64,000 nucleotides of DNA from Thalia democratica. Its lineage: Eukaryota. Positions 33,967 to 62,097 of the stretch are shown here, in pieces. Each line of letters opens with the position of its first letter. Position 1 is the stretch's first letter. The notes beneath the pieces were generated by a model that worked only from the letters and a program-made list of their open reading frames with translations, did no database searches and was not told where the DNA came from. The stretch spans positions 43,958,001 through 44,022,000 of the forward strand of contig OZ241833.1 of NCBI GenBank assembly GCA_965202585.1, given 5' to 3'. A program made the translations under genes and the position numbers.

Positions 33967-34290
33967 ATGATAATAAATTCCAAAAGATTAAGAAAAATTA
34001 TACGTTTTAACCCTCCGATTTGCAATTCTGTAAAAACCAATATAGGAAAGAGATTTTTGGACCTTGTCGGTCTACATTTTCCCAAAAACAACAAATTTCA
34101 CAAGAATTTCAACAGCCATACAATCAAAATCTCGTACATCTGCTTGCCTAACATGAAAAATATCATCAACTAACATAATAAGAAAAATTTTAGAGGTTGC
34201 AAACAGAACGAACAGAAAATGCAATCACAGAAACAAGATGAAATTTCCTTTTAATAGTGAAAGCCTTTTAAAAGATGTATAGTATAATCC
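33967..34290 (+). mobile_element. Degenerate Penelope-like retroelement fragment (RT-to-GIY-YIG linker)
   Basis: RKIIRFNPPICNSVKTNIGKRFLDLVGLHFPKNNKFHKNFNSHTIKISYICLPNMKNII matches the remembered PLE motif WFNPP...TNIG..FL.L...HFP.....KIFN..T.KVSYSC.PNM. A decayed C-N-C-R..CP.. motif follows. Confidence 0.75.
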
Positions 34291-34544
34291 AAAATTCTAC
34301 AAAAAATTTTTGGTAAGCTAATATTTTGGCTAGCTTGCAGGCATCGTTTACAAGAGCTGCTACTAGAAAAAATTTTCAATTTCTTGAACCGTAGAAAAAA
34401 CAACAACACCCGAGATAGAAGTCTACAAAATAAAATTAAAAAGTTTGCTAAATATTATGCAGCACTTTGATGGAAGCTATGTTTTTAATTTAGAGTTTAC
34501 TTCTAAAATTCGTCAAAAATAACAAAGTTTTTGATTGCCTTGTC

Positions 34545-35390: not shown

Positions 35391-36995
35391 GTTTACTTTC
35401 GAGTTTAATAAAATACTTCAATTCCCAACGAATATTTGTGGTTATTGTTTTTTGTTAAGCGTTAATGATCTGAATAAACGCTTTAGATTTTTTTAGAAAT
35501 AAGTAGTAGAAGTTATTTGCTAACAAAACTTTTAAAAAAGTAAAAAAAAATAAAAATAAAATCGACCTTTTCCAAATATACCGATTTGATGCAGAGTTTT
35601 CAAAATTAATTAGCTCCAACATGCTTAAAGCTAGGAAACTTTTATTTTCTTTTTTCTATTTATGTGAATTTCCTACAACCTACAAAAATAGATTGAGCAA
35701 ATTTCTAATTTTTTGTTTTTGATTGGCAACAGATGCACCATAAAGTATACAAAGCCACAGCCACATATAAGGGATACATTTGTTAAAGGGAAGTTTCTTT
35801 CAAATCAAGATGGCAACAAAACAAGTACAGCTTCCTCAAGAAATTACAAACAACAGTCCCGGCTAAAGTCACTATATCAAAATATATTGAATTCTCAAAA
35901 GTTAAGTTGCAAATGCTATTTAAAATCAAACTGCTCAGTACCCAGAATGGCAGACAAATTTTCTATACGATATCTAGAAAGAATTGCTACTGTAGAAGCG
36001 GACAGAGATAAAGCGATTTATGTAAGAAAAGAACTAACTTCCGTGTGCCCTTGTTTTATATCTAGTTATTTATATTTCTTATTTATTTTTTGTCATTTTG
36101 TAAAGCTATTATTATTTATGTTATCCTAACTTTTTTTTAATCATTAATGTGAGTTTTTTTTGAAGTGTTTTTTGATTTTGACGAGTGTTTTTGCTTACTT
36201 TTCATTTTAGAATTAATCAATGTTTTTTATAATTACTTAGATACATAATTACAATGAGGAATAAATTACAAATTAATTAATTTCACGTTACTTGATCTTA
36301 CGACAATATTTGAGTTATTTTATTGTTACCTATAAAACTCTGAGGATACTTTTAGGAGAAAAAGTGTCAGCTAAAGTAACAATTGTCGAATAAAGTTATA
36401 ATAAAGTTAAAGTACATTTTTTTGCACATAAAAGCTCTGATTGTAAATTTTACTACTGATCAAAGCTAGTAAAGTTTAAATCTATAGATTAACTTTTTGT
36501 GTACTTTTCTTATACTAAAATGCAAAAAGTTTTAACTTAAATGTTGCTTTTTAAGTACCTAAAAGGTTTTAAGTTAAAACACTTTTACCTTACTTAGTTT
36601 ATTTGTAACTTGACATTTAGATATCTTTTTACAGAATAATTAAAAAATCTTAACTTATAAAAGCTTGTTTGAGTATAAAGCTTTGCAACGAAAATGACCA
36701 CTGGATTGGTTTAATTTTAAGCATTAATATAAAACGTAAGCTGACAACTACAAGTACATAAAAACCTACTATAAAAATATATTCAAAATAATAATAGACT
36801 TTTTCAAAAGTATTAAAAATATTTAATTTTAATTAGTTTGGAAGATATTTTGTCACTATGTTTTAAGAAGGAATACATATTTTCTAGAATATTACCAAAC
36901 ATAACATTTAAAAAGAAAAAACACATGATGTAGCTTTTTACAAATGTTTGAAAACTAAATATATATATATATACATATTAAACATGTGTTTAGCG

Positions 36996-37235
36996 CTGAG
37001 TTTTCCAAAGTGGGCCGTGACAGATACTCAGGGGCAACGAGCAGCAAAGGGGTAAGAGCGGGGCCATGAGTCATAAGTTGAAACTTACACTAGATATTCT
37101 TGAGTCGCAGATGAAGAGAAAAAAAAGGTTTTTGGTGTTTTTTATCGTAGTTTATAAGTAATCTTGTTAAAGGGGGCCATGACTTTTTCAATTTCTTTAA
37201 AGGGGGCTATTTGCAAAAAAATTTTGGAAACCCTG
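36996..37235. mobile_element. hAT-type MITE, 240 bp, with 8-bp target-site duplication
   Basis: Right end ttttggaaaccctg, left end degenerate ctgagttttccaaag. Flanks gtttagcg (36988-36995) and gtttagtg (37236-37243) match at 7/8. Confidence 0.7.
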
Positions 37236-37678: not shown

Positions 37679-39567
37679 ATGATAAAACTTTCTTTTAAAC
37701 TTGATGTTAGTTCGACCAAATTGCTACTTGGATTTGTTGGAGTGTCAGCTACGATTGGTGCTCTTTACTACTTGTCTCATCAAAATAAAACAACCAAATA
37801 TTTAAAGAGTGGCGACGAAATATCCACAAGAGTGAAAGAGAAATCTGGTAGATTGAATGGAAATAAAACAGGGTCTGTAAATCATAACGTGAAAGTTGTT
37901 TCAAATATTTGTGAAATACATGATGAATATGATCATCACACAACAAACCTTGCATGTGAAGGAAATCAGATATTAGATAATGATCCACAATCACCTAACA
38001 CTGAAGCAACATTCACACAAAACAAGGAAAAATTGGTCAGTTTGGATGAATCTGATGTAGGATCACATGTTGAAAATAATAACAATAGTAAAACTAAAGA
38101 GGATAAACCAGAAGTGAATAAATATCCTGTGAATAAAAAACCAGACGATATAAGTCAAAAAGAGCACAATGAAACCAATGATGCTCCTACTAGTCGTGAA
38201 GACAAAAATATTCTTGGAAGCAAAAAAGAAGCTACATTGGCAGAAGAATCAGCAGAAAAAGATATCGGAGAAGCTAATGATCCTAAAAAAGATACCAAAG
38301 ATAATAAAAATGTTGATAAAGTAAACCAAGTCGTTAAAAATGAAAACTCAAACAACAAATCTCCTGTAAATGAATACCTAGAGAAATCTAGAACACAAAA
38401 GCAAATTAAAGTTAATGATGCTCATAAAAGTCGTAATGACAAGAATGTTTTTAAAGCAAAAAAGACCTGTATTGGTAAAAGATTCAATAAACTTTGAAAA
38501 GGTACAGAATTTGAATAATATTTAACAACTGCTTGATGCCAAAGCAACAATCACACAAAACAAGGATGAAATAGTTAATTCGGATGAGTCTGATCTAGGA
38601 TCACAGGTTGAAAATATTAACAATAGTAAAACTAACGATAACAAACCAGAAGAGAATAAATCTTCTGCCAATGAAAAATTAGTCAAGCCCAGAACAAAAG
38701 AATGCAATAAAACTAATGACCCTCATAATATTCATGAAGACAAAAAGATTACAGGAACAAAAGAAGAACCTACTTTGGCAATGTGGTCAACTAAAAAAGA
38801 TACTGGAGAAGCTACTGATCCTTAAAAAATACCATAGACAGCAAAAGTGTTGATAAACATAATCAAAGTGTTCTAAATGAAAATTCTAACAAAATAGAAA
38901 GCGAACAATACCCAGTTAATTTTAATTTATGTTTACATAGTTGAGAAGTTCTTTGTCGTTATATAAATGTCAATCTGAAACAGTTCAAAAACTTACGTAG
39001 TTTGCTCAATGATCATAAAGGGAACAAAAAAATAGAAGGAAAATATTTAATAAAATTAAATTAAAATGTCAGACTTTCGGCATAATTTACGACGAAATTC
39101 AAAAATGTCTATCGTACCCTGATCTGCGATTTTTAGTAAAACAGATATTCAATTTGAGAACAAATCTGTGGAAAGAAATAAAATCTGTAAAAGCATCTAG
39201 CAATAACAATTTTAAAGTGACTGAAAATACTAAAAAATTGGTTGGTGGAATAGTTGAATATTTAGAACAGTTTAACATAGCAGTAGGCTTTGCTATTCAG
39301 AGCTTATCATCATTATATCAAGTGGTAGATAATGACCAGTCTGATAAAGTTAATGAACAGCAAGACCTGAGCTCGGCTTTTAGTAAATACAAAATTAGTT
39401 TGAAGTCAACGCTTGAAAAGCTTAATAACTCTAAAGCGTTTAGTGCGGTTAATGAAGTCCGAAGTTACGTTTCAGATATAACTATGTTGACTAAATCTTT
39501 TTTTACATGGTATGAAGAAAATGTTGTTGGATATGTTGAAAAGTACTTTTTTGAAATATTATTATAA
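37679..39567 (+). pseudogene. Family copy 11: long type B pseudogene
   Basis: 272-aa 5' ORF to 38497, frameshift and stops in 38450-38950, C-terminal frame 39154-39567. Confidence 0.85.
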
Positions 39568-42309
39568 GCTTTGTATTATGAATCTATTGAACACTATATT
39601 ATTTATTTGTTATTTTTGTAATATGTTTATGTATAAATTGATTTTCATGTATTTGTGTTTAGTTTTTGAAGTTTTTTCACGTTGAATTTACTACAAAAAA
39701 CTCTTTGTTAATTATGAAAAATTCTTACTTGTTTTGGTAAAAATATTTAACATAAACTAGTTGAGAACAGTTTTTTTCGTTTTCATTCTTTAGTGTTATC
39801 ATTAGTTAACTGTTACCACAAAGTTATCTTTTAAGCTAAGTGATAACAAATAACATCATCATATAAAGAACCAAAGAGTTGTTAGCATATTTTTTGTATT
39901 AACATCAATAGTACTTAAATGATTCAATATTTTTGTACAAGAATGTAGCAATTGATAATTTGGAAAATCTGATAAGGGAATTTAAAGCGTCAAGTTTATA
40001 AAATTCATATAACGAAAGTTAGAATTTAACAGGGAACCGCTAAGGTTTAACTCTTTCTTTCCAACCAATCAATTCCTAAACGATAAATCCCTACCTGGAT
40101 CAATCACTTAATCAGTTTCCACCCAGCAATTAAGTACCACTTTTACACAGCATCAATTGCACGTAGAGTTGTTTTCCGGTGTCACTTTTCCACAAATCAT
40201 CACTTTTTTATGTCAGCACTTTGCACGAAGCCTTCTGTTTACATGACATCAAATTTTTACTGGTGAAACTTGTTCTTTTCTAAGAGTAAAGCCTAGAAAA
40301 GAATTTTATAACCTTTTGCTACTTGCGAATGATTTCTTAAAGAGTAAATGGTAGTTTACTTAAACGAGCTGACAAGCTTTGTAGTATAAATTCTTCATAT
40401 TTAAAAGAAAAATAAACGTAGCATATTAAAATTTCAGAATGAAGTGAAGTAGATATTAATTTTTATACATATTATCTTATAAATTGTTTTTACATTTCTA
40501 CTTAAATATATGTACTAAATTTTTATAAGTTTTTTTTCGATTTATTGTATCAAATGATTTCTGTAAAAATTTTTTTTAATTAATTAAAGTTTTAGAAATA
40601 GTCATATCATTGCACAATTATTTATGTGCTTGTATACTATTTTTAGGTAGCACTAAACAATTTACACTTATTTGTTTTTTTAAGTTATTTGCAAATGCAA
40701 CTTGTTTTTTCTAACCAAACAACATGCATTTATTTCAATTAATAACAATTTTAAATTAATTTATACGCACTAGTTTGAGCAGTAGTTCACTTGTAAGGAA
40801 TTATGACGTAACAACGTGAAAATAGCAATTAAAAATTTTTGAGCGCGAATAAGAAACAAGTGCTGTTATAATCAATATTTTTATCAGAAAGATCTTGTTG
40901 TCCCTGGAATTTTTAAAGTCACCTCTGGTGGCCATGCGTCAACTAATTTTAGTACAGTTATTCAAAATAAATTTGAATGAGTTTGGCTTAACTACAAGTT
41001 TAAAAACAGTTCCTTTTGTGTTTTATCCCTTAGCATTGTAAGAATACTAATTTAGGATGTTTAGTTAATCAAAAATTAGTAGTTAGTACAAAATTTTTAC
41101 AAAAAAGTTTTCAATTTACTTAAATGTTATTAAAATAAATGTTTAAAAATAAATAGTGATGATTTATGAGAATTTTGGTTAGCAAATAATCACAGTTTGT
41201 ACGTTAACTTCCGAATTTAAACTGTTAGTTATTTAAAAACTGTTGCAATGTGTTTTGTTACTTCTCCTATTTGGAGCTGTTTTTGATAAACTAAAACTTT
41301 CATCTTTTTAAACTTGTCGTAATAAAAAATAGTTACCTAGAAAAGTAACTTAATTTCTACTGAAATTAATGTGTTTAAAAAAAAATCTTCCTCTTATTCC
41401 GTCTCCTTCTTTACAAAGTTTTCTGCAGAAGTTTGAAAGGTCATCAATATTAAAAGGCAATAAATAAGTTTTGTGCAATATATACGCTTACGTCTATCCA
41501 CCTTACCCAAAAAAAAATTCGAATGAAATAGTTTACTCAATTAGAGCTTAGAATACACAGAAGTAAAACGTCAGCCAACTAAAGGCTTATTTTTCTGATG
41601 ATGATGCACAGCACACCAACAACAAACCCCTTAGAATCATTAAATAAACGTAAATTTTTTGAAAAGCTGAGTTACGCCAAACGCATTGTTTTTTTTGCTA
41701 AAACAACTGCATAGCTTCTGCGTCTAAACGTTTTTTTTATAGAACAGAAAACGTAAAAAAAAAAAGAAGAACTTCAATTAAAATGCAAAGAAAAACATGA
41801 TAGAAAGCTTCTTATTGAACCAATTTGGGCAGCTTTAAGTTTATATAAAGATGCAGTGTTTAGTTTAATATTTGCATCATACTCGTGTGTTAATTAAAGT
41901 ATACTAATATATCGTAAAAAAAACAGTGCCAATATTTCTTTATATACCTCCTTTTCTAGTATGTGTAAACCTTTTTCATATCAATAAAAACAAACAGTTT
42001 GAACTATATGATACATTTACATCGTTTTTACACTTTTAAGCAGAGAAGGTAGTATACTATTGTTTGTATGTGTAATTTTGCTTTTTTTATTTTTTCATCT
42101 AAATTTTATTTCTATAATCGAGTAATTCTTATTATTGTATAAAAACTTTTTTCAAACATAGAGTAAAAGTATACAATAGCTTAATTATTAATAATTAAAT
42201 TAAATTAAAAAATTCTTCAGTAACAAGAAGATATTTAATAGCATTAAAAAAGATTATAATGAAGCATTAACTTCAACGGATATTATAGAATAAAAGGATA
42301 TAAATTCTA

Positions 42310-42630
42310 ATGATAATAAAATCCAAAAGATTAAAAAAAATTAAACGTTTTAACCCTCCGATTTGCAATTCTGTAAAAACCAATATAGGAAAGAGGTTTT
42401 CGGATCTTGTCGGTCTAAATTTTCCCAAAAACAATAAATTTTACAAGAACTTTAAAAGCCATACAATTAAAATCTCGTACATTTGCTTGCCTAACATGAA
42501 AAATATCATCAACTAACATAATAAAAAATATTTTAGAGGTTGCAAACAGAACGAACAGAAAATGCAATTACCGAAACAAGATGTAATTTCCATTTAATAG
42601 TGAAAGCCTTTTAAAAGATGTATAGTATAA
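42310..42630 (+). mobile_element. Second copy of degenerate Penelope-like fragment
   Basis: Near-identical translation to 33967-34173. Confidence 0.72.
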
Positions 42631-42889
42631 TTCAAAATTCTACAAATATTCTTGGTAAGCTAATATTTTGGCTAGCTTGCAGGCATCGTGTACAAGAGCT
42701 GCTACTAGAAAAATTTTTCAATTCTTTAACCGTAGAGAAAACAACAACACCCGAGATAGAAGTCTCTAAAATAAAATTATAAAGTTTGCAAAATATCTTG
42801 CAGCACTTTGATGGAAGCTATGTTTTTAATTTAGAATTTACTTCTAAAATGCGTCAAAAAAAAAAAACAAAGTTTTTGATTGCCTTGTC

Positions 42890-43740
42890 TGCGGGTGATT
42901 ATAAAAATATTCTCAAACTAGCCAAATTTTACATCGAACTTTAGCCCTCGCAAGGTTTCGCTCTTTAACGTCCTGGATCTGTTTTTAAAGCTAGATGGAT
43001 GTACAAAGTCATTTACGCTCTTAAAGTAGTTTTGATTTCACAACAGAACTCATTAAAAACTATTTTAGACACCGCATGTTTAAAACAACTGAAACGTTTT
43101 TTTTTACATAAACTGCTACCTTCCCTATTGGATCAATTGTACTGTAGCTTCTTCAGCTCCTGGCAATGAGTTGGACCTATTAATCAAACAAAAATACAAA
43201 AGTACTGATAAGTTTTGTGCAACCTCTGCGTTAAGTACTATGATAAACCATCTCTGGTGTCTTGTTAGAGAAATTGTTCCTTTAAGCTTGTTTGATGATT
43301 TTACCAGTAAATCAGTCAAAGCTAAGGTTGCTGATCTTTAAATTATAAAACAAATCAGTAAAACACCTAAACATTTAGAAAAAAAACAATGATTTACCTA
43401 ATCGTCATGTTTAATCTAATGAGAAGTATAATTTAGCAGACTTTCTTGGAAGTAGTTACATGCTCTTTTTTTATCCTAGACTGCAGTCATTCATTTCTTA
43501 TTAAACCGCCAGAACAATGGACTAGCGACAAAGACTACTTAGAGGCAAGAGAAATACTTAATTACATGAAAGTAGTCAATGATGCCGTCGAAAGAGGTGT
43601 AAAATTGTCCAACGATTTTGTAATTTCGTCGAGAAATGAAGTCACGTATCAAAATAGTTTATAATTTATCAAGGAGGATAGGAAGCAACTACCAAACCTT
43701 GGACTTATAAATAGTTCAAGAAAGAAGATATTGTAACTCG
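42890..43740 (+). mobile_element. Second copy of hATm-like transposase remnant
   Basis: PG...KARWMYKVIYALK near 42972, and VVNDAVERGVKL in 43446-43664. Confidence 0.68.
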
Positions 43741-45473
43741 TTTTACTTTCAAGTTTAATAAAACTCTTCAATTCTCAACCAATATTTGTTGTTATTGGAT
43801 TTTTTTAAGCGATAATAGTCTGAAAAAATATTTAAAAATCTTATTTTAAAATAAGTAGTACAAGCTATTTGTTAAACTTTAAAAAAAATTAAAAAAATAA
43901 ATAAAACCGACCTTTTCCAAATATACAGAAATAAAGAAAAATTTTCAAAATTAATTAGCTCCAACATGCTTAAAGCGAGTTATTTAATGTCTATTTATGT
44001 GAATCCCCTACACCTAAAAAAAATGGATTTAGCGAAATTCTAAATTTTTCATTATTGATGGGCAACAGATGCACCCTAATGTATACAAAGCCACAGCCAC
44101 ATATAAGGGATACATTTGTTAAAGGGAAGTTTCTTTAAAATTAAGATGGCAACAAAACAAGTACAGCTTCCTCAAGAAATTACAAACAACAGCCCCGGCT
44201 AAAGTCACTATATCAAATAATATTGAATTCTCAAAAATTAAGTGGCAAATGCTATTTAAAATCAACTGCTCAGTACCGTGAAAAGCAGATAATTGCTCTA
44301 TTTGCAATCCAGAAAGAATGGCCATTGCTGAAGCGGACAGAGATAAAGCACATAATATAAGAAATGAACTAACTTCCGTGTGTCCCTGTTTTATTTCTTT
44401 GTATTTGTAATTCTTATTTGTTTTTGTAATTTAATGTTATTTATGTTATCCTAATTTTTTTTATTCATTATTGTGAGTTTTTTTCGAAGTTTTTTTTTAT
44501 TTTACGAGTGTTTTGGCTTACTTTTCATTTTAGAATTAATCAATGTTTTTTATAATTACTTAAGTACATAAATGAATTACAAATTAATTAATTTCACATT
44601 ACTTGGTCTTACGATAATATTTGTGTGCTTCGTATTATTTTATAAAAACTTATAAAACTCTGAAGTTGCTTTTAGTAGAAACAGTGTCAGCTAAAGTAAC
44701 AATTGTCGAACAAAGTTATAATAAAGTTAAAGTACATTTATTTTGCACATAAAAACTCTGATTGTAAATTTTACTATCGATCAAAGCTATCTAAGTTTAA
44801 ATCTATAGACTAACATTTTGTATACTTTTCATATACTACTTAAAGTGCAAAAAGTTTTAACTTAGGTGTTGCTTTTTGTATTTAAGTTAAAATTGTTTTA
44901 GCTTAACTTAGTTTATTTATAACTTGACATTTAGATATTTTTAAACAGGATAAATTAAAAATTTAAATTAGTACAAGTTCGTTTGAGTAGAAAGCTTTAC
45001 AAATAAAATGACTACTGCATTGGTTTTTGTTTAAGCCTTAATATAAAAAGTTAGCTGATAATTACAAGTACATATAAAATTTTACAAAAATATATACAAA
45101 ACAAAAGTTGAACTTTTTATAAGAATTAAAGATATTAAACTTTAATTAGCTAAACCATAGTTAGTCACTTATATTAAGAATAACAACTCGTCAACCAACT
45201 TGAACAAAAATTATATTAAATTTTCCTTCCTAAAGAGTTACTTTTAAAAAATATTTGTCAAAGTGCAATTTATGTGTTCATAATTCTAAACTTATAGACT
45301 ATTTAATTGAAAATAAATCAAACTGACTTGTAGAAGTTTAATGATGTTCATTTTTTCATACACTCGAAAAATGCTTAATAAACTATAAAACATTATAATT
45401 TTTACTAATTTATGTAGTTTTGTAAATTTCATTCAAATTGAAACACTTTTAGCTGTTTACAAATCTATTTGCA

Positions 45474-46800: not shown

Positions 46801-48299
46801 TAAATTCGAAAGTACTTTGTGAAATAATTTTGTGAGCTTTATTTCATTAATTTATTGAAAACTATTATATTATTTGTTTTGTTATTTTTTTATGTTTGTG
46901 TATAAGTTGAATTTGTTGTAACTGTGTTATTTTTTAGAATTTACCATAATAAAGTCTCCGATAATTAAAAAAAATTCTACTTGTTTTGTAAAGTAAATAA
47001 ACTAATTTAAAACAGCTTCATTGTGCTTATTTCTCAGTGTTATCGAAAATTATCTGTTACCACAAAGTTTTATAACTGATAATCATTAAGTCACTAGAAG
47101 AACTCTATAATATTTAGCATACTCAAATTAACAACAATAGTAGTTAAATTAAATTAATATATTTGAACAAAGATATAGCAATTGGTAAATTGCAAAAATT
47201 GATAAGGCATTTAAAAAAGTTAATTCATAAAATGTATACAATAAAAGTTATTATCTAATAATAGAATAATTTAAAGCTCAGGTAGTCTTCTTGTTATAAA
47301 ACATCAAGTTAAGTTTTGAAGTTCTTACTAGTTAAAAAATATTTAAAAACGTTTTAGAAGTTAAAAAAGCTTTTTTTTTGCGTCATTCCTAAATATTTTT
47401 TTATATTTTTTTTAAGTAGTTCTGTTTATAAAACAGAAGTTGGCAGCCTTTTACAAGAAAATTTTCGAAAAAAAATTGCTCGCGAGCAGCATTGTATAAA
47501 AAAAAGTCTTACGCAAGTAAAACTCAATCTTGTTACGTTTACACAAATGCTTTTTTATTAACTGATGCGGAAGAAACACTTCTTCACTCGAATTCTTAGT
47601 TGTTTTTTTTATCTATAATGTATATTAAAGCTATATATTGATATATTTAAAACCTTTTTCATAACAAACCTAATTCAAACAGATTAAAAACTATACAAAA
47701 TAAGGTTTTAATATTAAAAATAAGATAAAAACTTTTTTTAGACAACTCAGCAAATATGCAAATCAGACTGACTTTTAAGTTTACCAGCCGCAGCGACTAC
47801 TTTTTTGTTCACAACAAATCGTAAAAGTTCAAAACTAATATTTAGCAAAAAAATTTTTACGTAGCAAAATGAGTTACTCTAGCTGCAGTGTAATCTAAAG
47901 TTTAAAGTTTCAGTCGGCAGTTTAGATTTGGAAAAATTTAGTCTTTTGCGCGCCTGAGCATTTCAAATACGTTTAAAGTACAAAAATAACTTGATTTTGC
48001 GATTTATTTCGACTAAACTCATGAAATCTTTTCTATGCTATGTAAAACTTAAACTAAAAATTTACCGTGAATTGTCTTTTTTTTTATCTGCATTTTAAAT
48101 CCGCAATACAAGGAGTGAGTTTTAAAATCAGATTCACCAGGTAAGACTTAGATGCTCTCGGTCTGCACTTTTCCTTTTGCCGGCCGAGCTCCACATAAGT
48201 TTCGGTTATTTTCAACTCAGGAGCCGGATGGCTCGCAGACCGTTGGCTGACCAACTTTATCTTAAATAGACAATTAATTGAAAACACATGGTATGGTGG

Positions 48300-49700
48300 T
48301 ACACTAAATGAAACTTTACAAATGATTGCAAATGGAGTACGTGATTGCACCATACCACAATCAAACATGTTAAATCTTTTAAAGTCTGTTACTGGAGGTT
48401 TGTTCCAATATAATAAGCAATTATATACACAAATAGATGGCGTAAGCATGGGAAACCCACTAGCGCCTACTATAGCAAATTACTTCATGGGAACATTGGA
48501 AAAAAATCTGTTTAACACCGAAGATGAAAATAATCCAGTTTTATATCTTCGATATGTCGACGACATATTCTGTATCTTCCAAAAAGATGTTCCATTCGAA
48601 AAATTCCACAAAAAGTAAAACAAACTACATAAGTCTATCAACTTCACATATAAATTAGGTGGAAACGAACTCCCATTTTTGGACATTAACATCAAACTAA
48701 AGAGAGAGGAAATAACAACAAAGGTACACAAAAAAGAAATTGATAAAGATGTCATTTTAAATTTTAGTGCAGTGGCACCAATTAAATGGAAAAGAGCTCT
48801 AATACTGTGGTTTGTAAACAGAGCTAGAATTATAGCTTCTACGCATAACATTTACAAACAAGAAATCACAAACTTAAAAGAAAAATTCTTTAAAAATGGT
48901 TATCCAAAGAAATTTGTTGATGACATAATTGAAAGATCGCTTAGTATTAATAAAGACTGCACTAAACAAAAACTAAGTAACTCAGACTTCAAAAATATTG
49001 TAAAGGTACCTTATATTGAAAAACCTAGCATCGAGTATAAAAAGAAACTAGAAAAGCTTCTAAACAATTACATCGAAGACTTCAAAGTAATTTTTACTAC
49101 AACAAAAGTAAGCAATTACTTCAGTAATAAAGATAAGACACCCCATGAATTAAAATCAAACGTGGTCTATGAGTATAAATGCTCTTATGATAAGAGTATC
49201 CAGTATATTGGATTCACTTCACGACCATTAGTAGAAAGAATTAAAGAACATTTAAAAGACAAAACATCTGTATCGGACCATATTAGTAGTTGTAATGTTT
49301 GTAAAAATGAAAAGATAACTGTTAATAATTTTGGAATTTTAAAAGAATGTAGAAATAAATTTGAGACCCTGATAAGTGAAGCTCTACTAATTAAACGATA
49401 TAATCCAATTTTAAATAAACAATTAATTAAACCGGGTATTACCCATACTCTAAGAGTTTTTGATTAGTTTGATATATAATAGTTTAACAATTTGTTAGTA
49501 TTCATGTAAAATATAATTTTATTATAGTTTATAATCTTAATTTATAAAAAATTTTATATAATGTATCACTTAAAAAAAAAAAATTTTTGTAAACATAGTT
49601 GTTTATCACTAATTTTAGTTATTTTTGCACAGTATTTTGTTGATAATGACTAATGGATAGTCGAAACGTCGTCATGCGAATAAATTTTAAACTGAGAATG
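48300..49700 (+). mobile_element. 5'-truncated Penelope-like retroelement (RT C-terminal half plus GIY-YIG endonuclease)
   Basis: QIDGVSMGNPLAP and YLRYVDDIF RT motifs (48322-48618). One in-frame TAA at 48616-48618, then the same frame continues (NFTY..., LPFLDI, KNGYP) to VVYEYKC...YIGFTSRPLVERIKEH (GIY-YIG). Stop at 49467. Confidence 0.93.
49640..49675 (+). ncRNA. Minimal hammerhead-ribozyme-like motif (U3/A8 core variant) at the PLE 3' end
   Basis: TTGATAAT, stem GACTA/TAGTC with loop ATGGA, then GAAAC-GTC. Position and form fit PLE hammerheads, but helix I is poorly paired. Confidence 0.5.
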
Positions 49701-51653: not shown

Positions 51654-54045
51654 TGTTAAACTAAATGCTTGTGGTATTTTAATGAATTTTAAAATAGTGA
51701 ATATTTAAATAGACTTAAGATATAAAAGTTTATTCTCATTTCAAAAAAATATTTTTTAGTTAGTAGAGCTTGAAGCAACAACATTGAAATAGGGTTGATT
51801 AAAAGTTAAATACTCAAGAAAATTCTTAGTCTCAGTCTAACTCAGGCTAGCTTTTTTGTTTTGCATGCAGGATGGTTCAAGCCACTATGATTTTATTAAA
51901 AAACATTTAAGGTAATTTTAGGTGTCCTTAAAGTTCCTAGTTTCTTTTTAATTCTCTAAATCATAAATGAGATATTGTTCCTCCATATTTAATGATGTGA
52001 TATTTTATAGCTAAATTTGTTCAACAACTTATATTTTATTGTTATTAAAAGGTTTTTAGATCTAAATACAATATATTTAAGAAATATGCTAAGTATTAAA
52101 GTAAATCAGGATAACTAAGTATTTTCTAATACTGTTTGAGGTCATTAAGGACAGATTTAAGTGAGTTTGCCAAACACAAAAGATATCTCAGGATAAATTT
52201 GATATGTAAGGGTAGTTTTTTTTGCTCTCAAAAAATGGCAATCCTATTGATATAGAACTTAATAGAGATTATAGTTTAAATTGAAAAACAAGTTGTTCTT
52301 AATGATCTTCGAGTTTACTTAAAATTTAGCTTGTGATTTTTAATAATAACCTGGAATTATTCCTAGAGTCTACCATTAAAAAAAAATTGGAACTACATTC
52401 ACCAAATAGATTTTCAACCAAAAATCCACACCTATCTTATCAACACTTATGTTGCTACTTTGCCATTGAAACCTGGAAAAACCTGGAATTTTATACAATT
52501 TTTACATGTTAAGTAGAAAGACTTAGATTTGACACAAAAAATCTACTATATAGATAAAATATTTTTCATCATCAAAAATTATTTTATTAAAAAATAAATT
52601 TTAAGTAGTTTTACAGTATCTTTTCAATGTTTTTATAGTATTTAACACAGTTTTTACCCTAAAGTTAAGTTTAAACTAAACTTAAACTAAAAATAGACCA
52701 AAAAACAAGTAGTTTTAAAGACCTATAAGAAATTTTGAAAACCTGTAGAAAATTTCCAAAAAGTCCATGGCAACCCTGTGTTACGCTTAAATAACCACAA
52801 TATTTGTTTTTAAATAAAAGTAACTAATGTTTAAAATTTTCAAAAATTTACATTGTACTAAAAATAGTTTCAATAGTAATGTGGTTTAAAACTAATTTGT
52901 CACACTAACATGAAAACTTTAGCACACTTGAATTTTTATTTCTCAGTCTGACTAAAGGTAATTTATTTAACTCCTGATAGTTAAAATATTTCCTAAAATA
53001 TAAGACAGGTTTTTCTAAATTGGAAACGAGGTTACGTGAAAAACTCAGGACAGTTTAAGGTTATTCAGTACAGATTCTTCGATTAAAAAAGTAGCAACAG
53101 TGTATAATCAATTGCAAACACAAAATAAAGCTATCTGTGATAATCTTATAAAGCAATCTTAGAATATGTATATGTTGCTAACAGCTTAATTTTTAACTTG
53201 CTTAGCAGAAAAAGTGACAATCTTTTCAACCCTGAACTTCACAGAGTGCAAAAATTTAGTTTTTGAAATGAACAATATCAGCTAAACGTATGCAGATATT
53301 GTAAACAATTATTTCTGGTCAAAGAGTAACAAAATATATAAAAAATTTTTTTTAATTTCGCTAATTTTAATGCAGTTTTTTTGTCGTTTTTATTTTTCTT
53401 TAACATCGTTGTTATATACAGTTAATCTAATAAAGTAAGAATTGTTGAAATTAATTTAAGTATGTAGTTAATACTTGAAGTATTTTAGGACCACTGGGTA
53501 TTTAGTAAAGATAGCGGAGATATGTGTTAAAAATTAGTATAAAAGAGGAAAGCAATAAAAGTAATGTGAAAATAAGGTTAAATAAAAAAAAATCATAAAA
53601 AAAGTATCAAGTTAAAAATTTATAAGTTTTATTTGATATTATAATTACATGTTTAAATTAAAATATTTACTTAACTATTTATAAGCGTAAAAGCATGTTA
53701 GTAAAGTTAATTAAAAGCTGTTACGTATTCCTGCCACTAGAGGCCCTTTAAAGTTAGATACTTGGTTGCACAGAGAGTTTAGTTTATGTGTACATATTTT
53801 TATTAGCTGGTTTAAAGAGCTAAAGGTAGCAAAACAGGTTTTAAATTTTTAATAAATTTACTAGAGTTTGAGCTTTAAGTCTTTTTTTTTAGAATTGACA
53901 CCAATATTTTGCTTCATGACTTACGAAATTTATATCCAAACAACAACCATTGTCTAAACTTTGTTTTTATTAATTTGCACACTTGGTGTATAATTATTCT
54001 GATAAAATTGTTATTGCAGATATACACCTAAGTAATAAAATTAAA

Positions 54046-54870
54046 ATGTCCACTGATACGACAAACTCATCTGATAGCGAATTTTCATACTCCGTTGATT
54101 CGGACACGTACTCATCAGACTCGAGCTGCGACGAATCAGCAACCGAAGTGGCGGACCGCTTCGAAGATCAATGCTCGGCAGGAGACAAAGTTTGCTTAAA
54201 GTGCAAGCAGCCGTCGCACTACCCCCTGGCGTGCGCGATGATGAAAGACTGGATGGACAAACGCCAGAAAGTAGAAGAACCGGAAGAGAGCGACTCCGAC
54301 GCGGATAGCGATGAAGGACCTGAAGACGGTGAACGTGAAGACCAGACGCTGAAAGGCTGGTTGGAACAGAAGTTTGTTAGCATAGAACAAGAACAAAACG
54401 GCTCCGTCAGCGATGAAGGGCCTGAAGACCAGTTCGCGGAGTACTTGCGGGTGTACTCCAAGCATGAAAAGAGCATCGAGAAAGAAGGTAAAGTCTCCAT
54501 GGAAGAGGTGTACGAGAGGCTCGAAAATCCTGCCGAAAATGATGATGAACAGATGGAAGTTGACGACAAAAGACCGTCCACCTTCCACGAGCGAACGTTC
54601 TTGCAAAGGGCGCGCAGAGCTTTGAGAGAGTCCCGCCGATGCGTGATGCTAACCTGCGTGTACCGCTACAACATCGCTGGTGAAAAAAAAAGGATAATTT
54701 TCAAAGAAAGCACGGACATCTTGCAGTCGCACGTTGAAAAGCTCGGCGAGTTTTTGGAAAATGACGTCAGCAAGCTGTTTGACGGCGGGAAAATGAGGGA
54801 GATGGAGTTGCTTGTTAGCCTTTGTGAAGAGCAAAGCAAAGCCATCCTCGAGTATATCAAGGAAAATTAA
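54046..54870 (+). CDS. Ariadne/ARIH-derived RBR-like protein lacking RING1 and RING2 (acidic N-terminus, one IBR zinc site, Ariadne domain), 274 aa
   Basis: CSAGDKVCLKCKQPSHYPLACAMMKDW matches the IBR end (C-x2-C-x4-H-x4-C at 54193-54234). FAEYLRVYSKHEKS, FLQRARRALRESRRCVMLTCVY, IIFKESTDILQSHVEKLGEFLENDVS and LCEEQSKAILEYI match remembered ARIH1 Ariadne-domain helices. Likely start is AAAATG at 54046, with acceptor-like ttattgcag at 54011-54019 and AATAAA at ~54930. Confidence 0.82.
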   Translation: MSTDTTNSSDSEFSYSVDSDTYSSDSSCDESATEVADRFEDQCSAGDKVCLKCKQPSHYPLACAMMKDWMDKRQKVEEPEESDSDADSDEGPEDGEREDQTLKGWLEQKFVSIEQEQNGSVSDEGPEDQFAEYLRVYSKHEKSIEKEGKVSMEEVYERLENPAENDDEQMEVDDKRPSTFHERTFLQRARRALRESRRCVMLTCVYRYNIAGEKKRIIFKESTDILQSHVEKLGEFLENDVSKLFDGGKMREMELLVSLCEEQSKAILEYIKEN

Positions 54871-55567
54871 CTTTTGAATGTTTTTTAGGAATCGTTTGGC
54901 GCTTTCCAAACTGACTGATTTTAGCGCTGAATAAACTAGTATAATTAAATTTGCTTAGTGTTGTGTATTATTCAAGTTTTTTAAAATGAACCAATAGACT
55001 AAAGTTATATGATTGATAAAAGTAAAACTAAATTGCTCATTGATCCAATTTACAACTAATAGTTATTACACTAACTAGTTAAGAGTGTATAACACAAAAT
55101 TTATTAAATTTAAGTTTTACCCTGCCAAAAAGTAACTACCCTTATATCTTTAAAAAAGTCAAAATCACGCTGAAAAAATATAAAGGATTAATTATCTAAA
55201 ATTGTAGTATTAATTTTTTTTTGATTAAAACTGATAAAGCTTGAAAGTTATAAAATACAAATCAAGTTTACTAAAAATAAAGTAATATTATAAACTGCAA
55301 TATAATGCTTTAACTTAAAATATGGTAAAATAAATAAATTAGTCGTATCTTAACAGACCTTTGTGCCTAAATAAAAATAAATTTAATATTGGCAATCCTG
55401 TAACAGAGTATACAAAATAGCTCTAACTGTACAGTGTGTGTCTGTCAAAAAGCCAACATAACAAACATATATGTAATTATAAAACAAACATAACAAATCT
55501 TTTATACATTTTTTTTTTGCTGCTTCAGGCTCAAAACTACAAGTATTAAGTAACATTCAAAATATTC

Positions 55568-56384
55568 TCAAAAAAATCCAGCAAAATTTTTAATAATACC
55601 CCCTAAAAAGATATCAATTACGAAGTTTGTGTGAATAATACTTCTTATGACGTTATCACAAATACTGGTGTGGCTACAGCTGTCAAGTTTTTCATGTGAT
55701 AACTTCAAATTTTCTGTGTATTCATTGGAAACAGAATTGAATTTTTCAGTCAATTGAGTTTGATTAGAAAATAGCAGTTTGTGCATAAAAAACAAACTTT
55801 AACCTACTAAGTCTACTGCTATTTTGAACTGTTTTAAAAATTCGACTATATGACCAATCAACTTTATAGTACTTTCAGTTTTGTCACCGACCTTTGAAGT
55901 ATTTATGCATGATACCACACATTGCATTTCTTTCCATAAGTTCGTTCTCAAAGCGAATATTTGGTTCACTATGCTTTGTAAAAGTAAATTCGTAAACCTT
56001 CCTTGAATATTTTCGTAAATTTCGCCATAAGTCTGACATCGTGTTTTTTTAATTTCGTTGAACACTTTTATCCTGTTTCTTTTGATGCCATCATAATCGT
56101 TAAGCAAGCTACGCAAACATTTAAACTGTTGCTAATCAACATTTAATTACTGAGAGTTTTGAAGTTTTAGTAATGACAATCTAATGTATAAACGGCTTGA
56201 CCATTGTAATTGGATTGTTTGAGTTTTCGTTTTGAACATTTTGCTTAAATTTATCAGCGCTTTTATTGTCTGTTATATCTTTTTGAGGAATATTAATTTC
56301 TCTCATATCTTTTTTAGTTGACTTGTCTATCGATGTAGCTCCTTTTTTGTTCCAAAACACTGTTTTAAGTCCGATTTTGAACAA
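55568..56384 (-). pseudogene. Family copy 13: C-terminal half of a diverged type A (A') pseudogene
   Basis: Fragments LRSLLNDYDGIKRNRIKVF...IVNQIFALRTNLWKEM in 55799-56116, in three frames. No 5' half. Confidence 0.8.
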
Positions 56385-56783
56385 CTTTTTTAGTATGTTA
56401 TTAATACTTAAGTAACTTACTAACTAAAAAGTATCAATGGTGTTACATGCAAAATTTACATTCCGTGCTAAAGTGACGCTGTACTTTTCTGAAACCTACA
56501 TAGTTAATAATACTAAGAAGCGGTCATAAAGTTGATTTCTTTAAATACTAATTTAGAATTTTTTATAAATAGATATTTACAATGGTACTTGTAAAGTTTG
56601 ACCAACAAAAGGTTTAATTAACCTTAAAATTAATAACAATCTAAACTAAGTCCAACAAAAACTCAACAAAATAAAGTTATATGTATGCATGAAAGAAACA
56701 TAACAAACAGTTATCTTTTTATTAGGTTTTTTGCTTCAGGCTCAAAATTGCAAACATTAACTTAGCTAACATTTAAAGTACTC

Positions 56784-58330
56784 TCAATAGATTCCAGAAA
56801 ATTTTTAATCATGTTCCTTAAAAATATATCAGTTATATAATAAGTGAAAACAATACTTCTTTTAACATCTCCATCAATGCTTATGAAATTACAACATTGA
56901 GTTCTTCGAGTGAAGACTTCAAGTTGTCTTTGTATTCACTATGAACAGAATTGCGATTGTCAGTTAACTCAGTTGGGTTACAAAATAGAACTTTGTGCAT
57001 TAAAAGCAAACTTTGACCGGCTAAATCCGCTGCTATTATAAAACTGTTCTAAAAATCCGACTATTCTATCAAGCAACTTTTTAACACTTTAAATTTCATC
57101 ATCGACCTGTAGAGATTTTATGCGTGCTTGTACAGATTGAAATTCTTTCCACATCTCTGTTCTCAAAACGAATATTTGGATCACTATGCTTTGTAAAGCT
57201 GCGTACATAAACCTTCCTTGAATTTTTTCGTAAATTTCACCATAAGTCGGACACTATTTTTTTATTCTGTTAAACATGTTCAACCTGTTACTTTTCTTGC
57301 CACTGTCGAGCAAGCTACGCAAGTTTTTGAACTGTTGTAAATCAACACTTAAATACCGACAAAGAGTTTTAAAGTTTTCATAATTTCATTTAATGTTTTC
57401 ATAATGACTTTATCATTGGTAGTTGGATCGTTTGAATATTCATCATAAACATTTTTCTTTTCTTTAACAGAAGTTTTATTGTATTTGGGATATTTTTGAA
57501 GTTCATTACCTTCTCCTGAAACTTTTGTACTTGACTCTTCTACAAATGTAGGTCCTTTTTTTTCAAAAATGTTTTCGTCTTCACGACTTAGATGAGCATT
57601 ATTAGCTTTAATTTCCTCCTTTGCTCTTAATTTACCTAGTTTTTCATTTACAAAAGATTTATCTTTTGATTTTTTTTCTGGACAACATGGTTTTCCCTAT
57701 TAACATTTCTATATTCTTTGGTATTCTTTAGGTTCAGAGGATCATTATTTCTTTATTGGTTAATACATCTGCCAATGTAGGTTCTTCTTTCATTCCATCA
57801 CACTTTTGTCGTCACAATTTTTAGGAGCATCAGTAGTTTTACAGAGCTTTATTTGACTAGTTTCGTCTTAGTTTTCATTTAAAAGTGATTCAATTTCATC
57901 TGGTTTGTCGTCGTTGGTTTAATGTTGTCATTATTTTCAACCTGTGAGCCTACATCAGCTCCATCCAGACTGACCATTTTGCCCTTGGTTTGTGTCAATG
58001 TTGATTCAGTGTTAGGTAAATGCAAATCATTATCCAAGGTCTCATTGCCTTCACATGCAAAGTTTGTTTTGTGATGATCATATTCAGCATGCAATTCACA
58101 AATATTCGAAACAACTTTCACGTTACGATTTTCTGACCCTACTTTATTTCCATTCAACTTACCAGATTTTTTTCTTTTTCCTGTGGATATTTTGTCGTCA
58201 CTTTTTTAAGATTTGATTGTTTTATTTTGATGAGACAAATAGTAAAGAGCACCAATGTTGCTGACACTCCAACGAATCCAAGAAGCAATTTACTCGAACT
58301 AACATCAAGTTTCAATTAAAGCTTTATCAT
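56784..58330 (-). pseudogene. Family copy 14: full-length diverged type A (A') pseudogene
   Basis: ATG at 58330 with acceptor 21 nt upstream. Anchor, linker and C-terminal motifs are recognisable, with multiple frameshifts and stops. Confidence 0.82.
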
Positions 58331-61300: not shown

Positions 61301-61397
61301 TTTTGATTATCAAAGTTAATGTTTATCACTAAATTATGTAATTTTGTGATTTTTATTCAATTTAAAACACTTTTAGCTGTTTACAAGTTTATTTGCA

Positions 61398-62097
61398 ATG
61401 ATAAAACTTTCATTGAAACTTGATGTTAGTTCAACCAAGTTGCTTATTGGATTTGTTGGAGTGTCAGCTACGATTGGTGCTCTATATTACTTGTCTCATC
61501 AAAATAAAACAACCAAGTCTTTCAAAAGTGATCACAAAATATCCACAGGAGAAAGAAAAAAAATTTGTAGATTGAATAAAAATAGAGTAGGGTTAGTAAG
61601 TCAAAATATGGAAACTGTTTTGGATATTCGTAAATTGCATCCTAAAAATGATTATCACAATACAAACTTTGCATGTGAAGGAATTCAGATATTGGATAAT
61701 TATTCGCAATCACCTAACACTGAAGTAACATTCACACAAAACAAGGAAAAGTTAGTCGATTTGGATGGTTTTGATATTCAAAATAACAATAATAAAACTA
61801 ACGATGATAAATCAGAAGTAAATAATTCTCCTGTGAGTGAAAATCCAGACGATATAAGTCAAAAAGAGCACAATGAAACCAATAATGCTTCTAGTAGTAG
61901 TGAAAACAAAAATATTGTTGGAAGAAAAGAAGAAACTACATTGGCAGAAGAATCAGCAGAAAAAATATCGGAGAAGCTATTAATCCTAAAAAAGATACCA
62001 AAGATAATAAAAATGTTGGTAAAGAAAATCATGTAGTACAAAATGGAAACTCAAACAATAAATCTTCTATAAATAAAAACCAAGAGAAATCAACAAC
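61398..62097 (+). pseudogene. Family copy 15: 5' half only, frameshifted near 61965 and interrupted at ~62097
   Basis: 212-aa ORF with anchor and first linker module. Homology stops after gagaaatcaacaaca. Upstream type is shared with copies 11 and 12. Confidence 0.8.

Follow-up and report, generated by a model that had tools for sequence, protein, structure and literature searches.

In ARIH-family RBR ligases, RING1 docks E2~ubiquitin and RING2, or Rcat, bears the catalytic cysteine. These enzymes form E3-E3 assemblies with neddylated cullin-RING ligases, and their Ariadne domain is both an autoinhibitor and a docking element. The window analysed here, a 64 kb stretch of eukaryotic DNA, contains an open reading frame on its forward strand (54046-54870; all features below lie on the same strand) that appears to encode an Ariadne domain with neither RING domain. 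The locus raises two questions: whether this frame is a functional gene in its own right, and what is left for an Ariadne domain to do once the catalytic parts of the ligase are gone.

Gene structure and composition

The frame begins with an ATG at 54046 and ends with a stop codon at 54868-54870. It is an intact, intronless CDS for a RING-less Ariadne-family paralog of 274 residues. The GC content of the CDS is 50% (GC3 61%) and that of the flanks 25%, and the ORF is the sole long GC-rich island in a eukaryotic window of 25% GC. Horizontal transfer as the cause of this contrast was considered and rejected, since the ARIH-like genes on related contigs are likewise GC-rich coding sequences in AT-rich flanks. 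A viral origin was also rejected, as the BFVD fold library gave no match at E <0.3 and IMG/VR contained no relatives. The term 'host ARIH', by which a sequence-only reading of the locus had implied a foreign or viral gene, does not fit a window of cellular eukaryotic DNA. The window also holds a tandem array of lineage-specific genes and a Penelope-like retroelement; no rRNA, tRNA or Rfam matches and no conserved housekeeping genes were found in it. An AATAAA polyadenylation-signal-like hexamer lies at 54930-54935, in a 3' flank that is conserved with L002, one of the related loci described below.

The protein has the layout that the sequence-only reading had given it: an acidic N terminus, a Trp-containing helix, an acidic linker and a helical domain. 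The N-terminal tail (aa 1-27, 54046-54126) is rich in Ser, Asp and Tyr, contains no Lys or Arg, has a pI of 4.05 and is predicted to be disordered (pLDDT <50). Similar tails occur in P0025 and P0001 in the alignment. Judged by sequence, the likeness of the tail to the acidic N-terminal regions of ARIH proteins is compositional only, and the amphipathic Tyr-Tyr helix of ARIH2 is not identified in the window protein. The IBR remnant and the post-IBR helix follow (54127-54276; assigned from the IBR profile and the ARIH1 alignment), with W69 in the helix formed by residues 60-77 of the AlphaFold model. The acidic linker (aa 78-128, 54277-54429) takes the place of RING2/Rcat, where alignments with full-length RBRs and ARIH1 show a gap. 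Its 51 residues include 20 Asp or Glu and no Cys, and their pLDDT is mostly <50.

Within the linker is a window-specific insert of 34 residues (aa 88-121, 54307-54408), which is missing from L001, L002, L004 and L006. Direct repeats of 21 nt flank it (54307-54327 and 54409-54429, spacing 102 nt). It is not recognisable as a tandem duplication of the next 102 nt, since outside the 21-nt repeats the identity does not exceed that expected from shuffled sequence (P 0.15). The motif that had been equated with the post-IBR landmark SETSNWIAAN sits in this insert, which is absent from every relative, so that it has to be given up as a landmark.

Relationship to the Ariadne family

The best PDB sequence match of the single window protein is ARIH1 (phmmer, E 2.5e-4), with the Ariadne part aligned to ARIH1 residues 441-545. 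The family profile matches ARIH1 at E 4e-13 in a single alignment that begins in the IBR tail, has a gap where Rcat would lie and covers the Ariadne domain to its end; its match to ARIH2 is weaker (E 3e-4). The Pfam Ariadne model gives a faint match (E 0.033) in one family member. The Ariadne domain (aa 129-274, 54430-54867), supported by phmmer, profile, AlphaFold and Foldseek, is a helical bundle with pLDDT mostly >90, falling to ~64-79 in the loop of residues 161-179. When the AlphaFold model is compared with the PDB by Foldseek, ranks 1-14 are every one ARIH1 or ARIH2, with ARIH2/TRIAD1 (PDB 7OD1, 7ONI) at ranks 7, 9 and 11-13. The alignment with 4kbl_B covers 153 columns with an rmsd of 2.6 Å and a probability of 1.00. 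In a tree of Ariadne domains made up wholly of environmental sequences, the family forms a clade (100/100) inside a larger clade (99/99) with the full-length proteins P0006/P0033, P0007 and others. Profile, fold and tree thus bear out the proposed descent from an Ariadne-type RBR ligase, and sequence and model together assign a predicted Ariadne domain to the window protein.

ARIH1/HHARI (PDB 4KBL, 5UDH, 7B5L) is the best match in both sequence and fold. The two proteins have in common the second zinc site of the IBR, a post-IBR helix with a conserved Trp and the four-helix Ariadne domain, and the window protein has equivalents of ARIH1 E431 and E503. Compared with ARIH1, it lacks the UBA-like domain, RING1, Rcat with the catalytic cysteine, the C-terminal aromatic tail and two of the IBR ligands; it has a Lys at the F430 position and an acidic insert between Ariadne helices 1 and 2, and its identity to ARIH1 is only ~21% in the Ariadne domain.

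The closest full-length relatives are P0006/P0033, P0007 and P0011, which are intronless and environmental, some of them marine (28-29% overall identity, tblastn E 1.6e-26), and which lie in the same 99/99 clade. They share with the window gene an insert and a motif after Ariadne helix 1, a coding sequence that is GC-richer than its AT-rich flanks, and an acceptor-like site before the ATG. They differ from it in having a UBA-like domain, RING1, a full IBR, Rcat with the catalytic-cysteine motif and a hydrophobic residue at the F430 position.

IBR remnant and lost domains

Six of the eight zinc ligands of the IBR are kept (C28, C43, C50, C53, H58 and C63), and all six are invariant across the intact copies and the aligned full-length RBRs. 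The second zinc site is complete and the first is half-kept. The C-x2-C-x4-H-x4-C knuckle had been placed correctly at 54193-54234 (C50, C53, H58 and C63) by the sequence-only reading; to these last four ligands, C28 and C43 are to be added. Positions 34-65 of the Pfam IBR profile align to residues 37-63 at 15.4 bits, below the gathering cutoff of 24.3. The match is confined to the C-terminal half of the profile, and the remnant is not a complete eight-ligand IBR. The profile and structure searches called for at the outset have thus given a sub-cutoff IBR match and an ARIH1/ARIH2 fold.

The alignment with full-length RBRs shows that the window protein lacks RING1, and its Pfam scan gives no match to a RING family. 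In the same alignment it has no UBA-like domain, as the 27-residue tail runs straight into the IBR remnant, and no Rcat with its catalytic cysteine. When seven ARIH-like RBR proteins, five of them full-length and two partial, were compared by tblastn with the 64 kb, they matched the window ORF alone, and no other RBR coding sequence was found there. The absence of both RING domains with the frame preserved is therefore confirmed. With the UBA-like domain, RING1 and Rcat all gone, ubiquitin can be neither accepted nor transferred, and the catalytically dead state that had been proposed follows from the loss of every catalytic part. The window protein is, with high confidence, an Ariadne relative by identity and a dead ligase. 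Binding of partners would be the only activity left to it.

Gene family and selection

Relatives of the window protein were recovered by an exhaustive representative search. A word-indexed homolog search with the window protein alone gave no match, and full-length ARIHs fall outside its length band. Scans of IMG/VR and of the JGI metagenomes returned zero relatives, and exact-sequence look-ups in a gene catalogue gave no record for the window protein or for one neighbouring gene product. The relatives are environmental ORFs, all from genomic contigs, and three of them trace to the Tara Oceans PRJEB4352 metagenomes. These three are the only pointer to marine plankton, from which the AT-rich eukaryotic DNA of the window probably comes. 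No description of a truncated or RING-less Ariadne protein was found in the literature searched, in keeping with the earlier view that the architecture is undescribed.

Besides the window copy there are two more intact copies, 63% and 44% identical to it, also on environmental contigs. Between the window copy and L002 and L001, dN/dS is 0.31-0.33, at dS values of 0.8-1.3 among the three intact copies. By bootstrap, its upper bound is 0.52-0.54 in the Ariadne part and 0.75-0.98 in the N-terminal part. A dN/dS of ~0.3 is moderate rather than strong constraint. Within-family conservation far exceeds conservation with full-length RBRs in every segment; helices H2 and H3 of the Ariadne domain are those most like full-length RBRs, and a Cys-containing motif of helix 2 is family-specific and invariant in A2. 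Other copies are broken: L004 has a stop codon, a frameshift and two lost zinc ligands, L006 is degraded by frameshifts and L007 is only a fragment. The dN/dS of the L004-L006 pair is 0.68, with a confidence interval that spans 1. These broken copies indicate birth-and-death turnover, and the family is dispensable enough for members to be lost.

Upstream signals and the status of the gene

A 3' splice-site-like element, consisting of a CTGAT branch-point-like motif, a pyrimidine-rich tract and CAG, is located at 53999-54019. It is conserved in the alignment of five homologous loci (window, L001, L002, L004 and L006) and ends 26 nt upstream of the window ATG, a distance that varies from 22 to 28 nt over the loci. 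It suggests either a 5'UTR intron or a spliced-leader acceptor. The interval from the acceptor to the start codon (54020-54045) is a putative 5'UTR. Since the homologous stretch has an in-frame TAA in L002 and L004, no in-frame upstream coding exon can be joined through this acceptor, and the start is the ATG at 54046. An equivalent acceptor lies ~22 nt before the ATG in an unrelated neighbouring gene family, which points to a general 5' processing signal.

The splice-site-like element and the frame that stays open from it to the ATG in the window would fit a larger conventional RBR gene of which the ORF is the last exon or exons, RING1 being encoded far upstream. Rcat, however, is missing from the middle of the ORF, so that upstream splicing cannot restore a ligase. 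The TAA codons of L002 and L004, the ATG and first residues that are conserved in five loci, and the acceptor of the unrelated neighbours all argue in the same direction; nor do the 54 kb upstream and the 9 kb downstream contain any coding sequence that resembles RING1 or Rcat, or the window a second GC-rich coding island. A terminal exon is extremely improbable, and the spliced-in RING exons that the sequence-only reading had foreseen as a possible refutation are argued against by the TAA codons and by the lack of RBR coding sequence in the window. That the ORF is a dead or dying copy, a relic of the birth-and-death expansion of ARIH genes left open by chance, is very improbable. The clear degradation of L004, L006 and L007 and the L004-L006 ratio, whose interval includes 1, would fit such a relic; but 822 nt are open in an AT-rich genome, in which chance often produces stops, the dN/dS of 0.31-0.33 has upper bounds below 1 in both parts at dS of at least 0.8, all six zinc ligands are retained, and conservation extends to the acceptor, the 5'UTR and the AATAAA-bearing 3' flank. 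Neutral decay, the other refutation foreseen, is thereby rejected for the window copy in comparison with its intact relatives. By its substitution pattern, the window gene is real and is maintained by evolution under purifying selection.

Origin of the truncation

The truncation would have arisen once, in the ancestor of the small gene family that forms the 100/100 clade, with duplication and loss under purifying selection thereafter. The window ORF is continuous, the related ARIH gene L005 is interrupted by an intron where the Ariadne domain starts, and the closest full-length paralog, L003, is also intronless. In L005, a polypyrimidine-CAG acceptor is located exactly where the homology of the family to RBRs resumes, and on its 3' side the Rcat deletion stops within ~1 residue of the intron position in this related gene. 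This hints at exon loss, or at a retrocopy of an exon-skipped transcript, as the origin. The copy does not have the edges of a processed retrogene, which would show a poly(A) remnant and target-site duplications: no A-tract follows the AATAAA. Since the copies stay homologous over ~60 nt before the ATG, into the acceptor-like element, and no A-tract is present, the present copies spread as DNA and not as mRNA.

The P0005 cluster (164-169 aa), which looks 'Ariadne-only', was considered as a further truncation and rejected. L005 shows that it is the last exon of an intron-containing gene, and its appearance arises because ORF-based gene calling cut this gene. P0024/L008 is like the window gene in being intronless, in having AT-rich flanks and in passing from the IBR region to the Ariadne domain without an Rcat. 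It differs in belonging to a separate clade with P0023 (100/100), in keeping the UBA-like domain, RING1 and a Leu at the F430 position, and in having lost the second IBR zinc site. From these sequence differences, its loss of Rcat is an independent event.

The switch helix and the proposed masking of Rcat in trans

A hydrophobic residue of the switch helix secures Rcat in both ARIH1 (F430) and ARIH2 (L381) (PMC7904520, PMC8460447), and the F430A/E431A/E503A mutant of ARIH1 is open and bypasses neddylation (PMC7904520). The equivalent residues of the window protein are K146, E147 and E231, so that the triad is incomplete. The F430 position is L, I or F in every aligned full-length RBR. In the family, six of the seven rows with a residue there have a charged one (K/E/E/E/E/D); the remaining row is P0043, an ORF that looks broken. 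The Glu equivalent to E431 is kept in all family rows with a residue, again except P0043, and the E503 equivalent is kept in most members, being G, W or Q in three.

These residues bear on the proposal that the free Ariadne domain masks Rcat of the same organism's full-length ARIH paralogs in trans, the clamping of RING2 that the sequence-only reading had considered. The retained Glu residues would suit such an inhibitor, as would the co-occurrence, in one environmental sample (ERZ17174914), of an intronless full-length paralog with an intact Rcat (P0006/L003) and a family member (P0001/L001). The charged clamp residue and the three replacements at the E503 position speak against it; this pattern is what would be expected of an Rcat-binding groove freed of constraint after the loss of Rcat, and the IBR-Rcat linker, which helps to secure Rcat in cis, is deleted as well. 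Masking of Rcat in trans is disfavoured and improbable. A different alternative is that the protein is a neofunctionalised scaffold unrelated to cullins, in which the helical bundle and the zinc knuckle would serve some other partner and the acidic tail and linker might be phospho-regulated or chaperone-like. Divergence from ARIH1 is large (~21% identity over the Ariadne domain), the family has conserved motifs of its own such as that in helix 2, its internal conservation is throughout above that with full-length RBRs, and the zinc knuckle is conserved despite the loss of RING1 and Rcat, apart from which it has no known role. Other partners, however, have no positive support, and to our knowledge the only documented functions of Ariadne domains are Rcat autoinhibition and cullin-RBX docking. 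A scaffold of this kind is unlikely.

Proposed role at cullin-RBX

A non-catalytic cullin-RBX binder appears to be the most plausible role for the window protein. It would act through binding alone, with an Ariadne domain that is free of its Rcat partner and charged at the position of the usual Rcat clamp. In the ARIH1 complex, the Ariadne domain contacts a composite surface of the RBX1 RING and CUL1, alone among the ARIH1 domains is still seen once ubiquitin has been loaded, and uses an RBX1 surface that it has in common with the E2 UBE2D (PMC7904520). ARIH2 has just two points of contact with CUL5-RBX2, its Ariadne domain and an acidic region at the N terminus (PMC8460447); Ariadne helices 3 and 4 bind the RBX2 RING. 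Elements of both kinds are kept in the window protein. Its Ariadne domain could occupy cullin-RBX, in competition with full-length ARIH paralogs or E2s, or it could act there as a non-catalytic adaptor.

Two features weigh against a role at cullins. The NEDD8-binding UBA-like domain of the ARIH1 complex is absent, so that a neddylated cullin might be bound with low affinity. In place of the loop by which ARIH2 docks on CUL5, between Ariadne helices 1 and 2, there is an acidic insert that is common to the full-length paralogs of the lineage. The competitor mechanism at cullin-RBX is tentative. That the family, as a stand-alone Ariadne domain with an acidic tail, is an endogenous competitor capping the surface of RBX RING and cullin that ARIH-type E3s and E2s use is possible but rather doubtful. 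The account as a whole, of a functional intronless gene encoding a dead ARIH-type derivative that acts by binding, is on balance slightly favoured.

Glomulin, a helical protein that is not an enzyme, inhibits cullin-RING ligases by masking the face of the RBX1 RING to which E2s bind. It offers a functional analogy alone, in having the same mode as that proposed here; it has no kinship with the window protein in sequence or fold, and binding by the latter is hypothetical. The inhibited RBX1 complex is PDB 4F52 (cited in PMC7904520).

Implications

The window protein would be a ready-made probe of the activity that an Ariadne domain has of its own. If it is indeed a competitor, it would be the first natural protein with an Ariadne domain as an autonomous module, and CRL/ARIH E3-E3 ubiquitylation would be tuned by it in an animal or protist lineage with greatly expanded ARIH genes. 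Binding to cullin-RBX would make it a natural case of E3 regulation by a dead paralog. The lineage, probably a planktonic one, has a dynamic ARIH expansion with at least two independent losses of Rcat. If cullins are not bound, the family would still be a clear example of neofunctionalisation after domain loss, of narrower interest.

Gene structure and domain layout

The ORF begins at ATG 54046 and ends with the stop codon at 54868–54870 on the forward strand, the position at which the sequence-only reading had placed it, and its product has 274 residues. The window has a GC content of about 25%, while the ORF (54046–54870) reaches 50%, with a GC3 of 61%, and is the sole long stretch above 40% GC within the 64 kb. 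The order of elements is also as first described. An acidic Ser/Asp/Tyr-rich tail (aa 1–27) leads to a C-x2-C-x4-H-x4-C knuckle (C50, C53, H58 and C63; 54193–54234), a helix carrying W69 and a very acidic linker (aa 78–128), from which a helical domain extends through the C-terminus.

Upstream of the ORF lies a conserved element (53999–54019) made up of a CTGAT branch-point-like motif, a pyrimidine-rich tract and CAG. This acceptor-like element ends 22–28 nt before the ATG in 5/5 homologous loci. Since an in-frame TAA separates the acceptor from the ATG in two environmental relatives (L002 and L004), anything spliced at this acceptor is non-coding and translation starts at ATG 54046. On the 3′ side, an AATAAA at 54930–54935 lies in a flank conserved with L002. 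A neighbouring unrelated gene family has a conserved TTTTAG about 22 nt ahead of its ATG, and acceptor-like sites precede each of its MIKLS... starts (for example at 3198–3222, 13885–13909 and 61373–61397). An AG acceptor-like site 22–28 nt 5′ of the start codon is thus common to two unrelated, otherwise intronless gene families. Such sites just before the start of intronless genes are typical of spliced-leader trans-splicing or short 5′UTR introns, and their sharing here suggests a general 5′ processing signal of one of these kinds.

Relationship to the Ariadne proteins

The homology of this protein with the IBR and with the Ariadne domain is genuine, as phmmer, the family profile, AlphaFold and Foldseek demonstrate. 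The only Pfam match is below threshold and covers the IBR model in its C-terminal half; phmmer against PDB sequences and the family profile both reach ARIH1. In the phmmer match, aa 39–74 correspond to the IBR tail of ARIH1, and aa 169–273 align without gaps to ARIH1 residues 441–545, in the Ariadne domain. The profile of the truncated family, which comprises this protein and its relatives without RING1 and RING2 (Rcat), matches ARIH1 with an E-value of 4e-13 in a single continuous alignment that starts at the IBR tail, runs through the whole Ariadne domain and leaves a long gap precisely at Rcat. The AlphaFold model, built from an alignment of 27 sequences, has pLDDT mostly above 90 for aa 126–273, with the tail and linker at low confidence. 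When this model is compared with the PDB by Foldseek, ARIH1 or ARIH2 occupies all ranks from 1 to 14 (for example 4kbl_B, rmsd 2.6 Å over 153 columns), and matches below rank 14 are insignificant. The protein belongs to the Ariadne lineage by descent and fold, as the sequence-only reading had proposed.

Absent domains and catalytic status

The protein was aligned with the ARIH-like RBR proteins P0006, P0007, P0009 and P0013, of which P0007 is partial and the others are full-length. Missing from it are the UBA-like domain, RING1, the entire Rcat and the C-terminal aromatic tail, together with the first IBR Cys and the fourth IBR ligand. Six of the eight IBR zinc ligands are kept and are invariant; the last four had been recognized correctly, but C28 and C43 are retained beside them. 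A tblastn search of the whole window with seven ARIH-like RBRs (five full-length, two partial) matches the ORF only, and no RING-coding exon is found in the 54 kb on its 5′ side or the 9 kb on its 3′ side. Because RING1, the UBA-like domain and Rcat are all missing, the protein is unable to position E2~ubiquitin or to form a thioester and is not a ligase, which upholds the earlier view of a catalytically dead module without either RING. Three defining features of RBR ligases, RING1, a complete IBR and Rcat, are wanting, and annotation of the protein as an E3 ligase is to be avoided. No description of an Ariadne protein without RING1 and Rcat was found in the searchable literature, in line with the first impression that the architecture had not been described.

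Relatives, selection and phylogeny

An exhaustive search of 1.84 billion representatives returns 24 matches, all of them ORFs from environmental assemblies; loci L004, L005 and L007 come from Tara Oceans marine metagenomes (project PRJEB4352), the one pointer to the habitat of the organism. The same start-to-stop architecture is found in two intact copies, P0025 (246 aa, 63% identity) and P0001 (243 aa, 44% identity), whose contigs (L002 and L001) are genomic DNA in which AT-rich sequence flanks the ORF. Pairwise Nei-Gojobori dN/dS for the three intact copies, which are possibly paralogs rather than orthologs, is approximately 0.31–0.33 at dS 0.76–1.29, and the bootstrap intervals lie below 1 in both the N-terminal and the Ariadne part. 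Other copies are degraded, though coverage of the relatives' contigs is low where stated (2–4x) and some apparent frameshifts or breaks may be assembly errors: in its IBR remnant, L004 (347–1098) carries a frameshift and a stop codon and is short of two zinc ligands, L006 (116–877) has frameshifts in the same region, and L007 (1351–1626) is a fragment of about 60 codons. L004 and L006 still have an open frame across their Ariadne part, and dN/dS for this pair is 0.68, with an interval that includes 1. With intact copies constrained and others broken, the truncated family thus shows birth-and-death turnover, the window copy being on the maintained side.

In the maximum-likelihood tree of Ariadne domains, the truncated family is supported at 100/100 and is nested (99/99) among full-length ARIH-like RBRs (P0006/P0033/P0011, P0007/P0008 and P0005/P0012), apart from the canonical ARIH1-like sequences. 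This nesting places a single truncation inside a lineage-specific ARIH expansion. The nearest full-length paralog, L003, is intronless, with a GC-rich coding sequence in AT-rich flanks and an acceptor-like site ahead of its ATG. Since it has the same GC pattern, the GC contrast of the ORF is a property of the gene lineage, and horizontal transfer as its source is rejected. In a different clade, P0024 (L008, 142–1380) is an intronless ARIH-like ORF of 412 aa in which the UBA-like domain, RING1 and the first IBR half are retained and the Ariadne domain follows directly. Its catalytic domain was lost independently, which shows that Rcat losses recur in these plankton lineages.

Origin of the deletions and of the insert

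In L005, a polypyrimidine-CAG acceptor lies immediately ahead of the first Ariadne-domain residues, which identifies the 'Ariadne-only' proteins of the P0005 cluster (164–169 aa) as an artefact of ORF-based gene calling. This intron position matches, to about one residue, the place where the truncated family regains RBR homology (Q129/F130 in the window protein). The coincidence fits exon loss or retroposition of an exon-skipped transcript and, involving one edge in one paralog, serves as a lead to the origin. The present copies have about 60 nt of upstream sequence in common, including the acceptor, and carry no poly(A) remnant, so they spread as DNA.

The motif equated earlier with the post-IBR landmark 'SETSNWIAAN' is not supported as that landmark; it sits in a 34-aa insert (aa 88–121) which is flanked by a 21-nt direct repeat, is missing from all other members of the truncated family and has no significant similarity to the RBR linker. 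Beyond the repeats, the insert is not recognizable as a duplicate of neighbouring sequence. The window copy branches within a polytomy of the family, and repeat-mediated deletion of the stretch in the other members is a formal alternative to insertion.

Genomic setting

The Ariadne-derived gene sits inside an array in which copies of one lineage-specific gene family stand in tandem and inverted order; the array covers 1172–62036 on both strands and makes up most of the window. Thirteen starts begin MIKLS..., and many copies are broken. Members lie, for example, at 3223–4542, 13910–15226, 25668–27590, 37679–38497 and 61398–62036 on the forward strand and at 7697–9562 on the reverse strand, with degraded copies at 55571–58330 (reverse). 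The products, of 212–640 aa, are modelled with a membrane-anchor-like N-terminal helix (aa 13–35), a disordered Asn/Lys/Asp/Glu-rich part of about 190 aa and, at the C-terminus, a confidently modelled helical domain of about 215 aa (pLDDT 80–97). The family has no Pfam match and no significant PDB fold match, and its only relatives are three ENA environmental ORFs.

A Penelope-like retroelement remnant (48199–49467, forward), broken into several ORFs, has a reverse-transcriptase (RVT_1) fragment with a YVDD motif (Pfam E 1.4e-6) and, after it, a GIY-YIG endonuclease domain (E 1.8e-6). Its presence points to the window being eukaryotic, probably animal, DNA. Within the array, a segmental duplication (~33930–36130 and ~42270–44430, about 8.3 kb apart) repeats short ORF fragments in the same order (33961–34170 as 42304–42513; 35091–35312 as 43437–43661); these have no significant Pfam match and are probably pieces of a transposable element. 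At 36961–37140, AT-rich DNA between genes has a short GC-rich blip reaching 50% GC, which contains no notable ORF, has no Rfam match at E ≤1 and is possibly a repeat fragment. The array and the Penelope-like remnant, together with the lack of any relative in IMG/VR and of any match in BFVD, rule out a viral origin, and nothing indicates the virus or host relationship implied by earlier mention of a 'host' ARIH.

Functional implications

ARIH1's Ariadne domain binds to a surface that the RBX1 RING and CUL1 form together, is alone among the ARIH1 domains in staying visible on CUL1-RBX1 once ubiquitin has been loaded, and occupies the RBX1 face that the E2 UBE2D also uses (PMC7904520). ARIH2 binds CUL5-RBX2 through two elements, its Ariadne domain and an acidic region at the N-terminus (PMC8460447). 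By analogy, we infer that the parts retained in the truncated family are those that touch cullin-RBX in ARIH enzymes. The protein may then be a non-catalytic cullin-RBX binder or competitor, the most plausible of the readings weighed here though a tentative one, in which it would act as a constitutively open, binding-only Ariadne module. Overall, the IBR remnant is the segment that most resembles full-length RBRs; among the Ariadne helices, helices 2 and 3 come closest to them.

The switch-helix residues bear on how such a module might work. The ARIH1 mutant F430A/E431A/E503A is 'open' and dispenses with neddylation (PMC7904520). The equivalent of F430 is hydrophobic in every aligned full-length RBR but is charged (K/E/E/E/E/D) in 6/7 rows of the truncated family, while the E431 equivalent is kept and that of E503 varies. 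The Rcat-binding groove thus looks relaxed, which is compatible with the open, binding-only module and argues against the earlier proposal that the protein clamps RING2 in trans; the retained E431 equivalent notwithstanding, inhibition of Rcat in trans seems quite improbable. A role unrelated to cullins is a somewhat stronger candidate, though still an unlikely one. These likelihoods need not sum with those of other rival explanations. Cullin-RBX binding by this protein, if true, would make the finding clearly interesting; at present it is moderately so.
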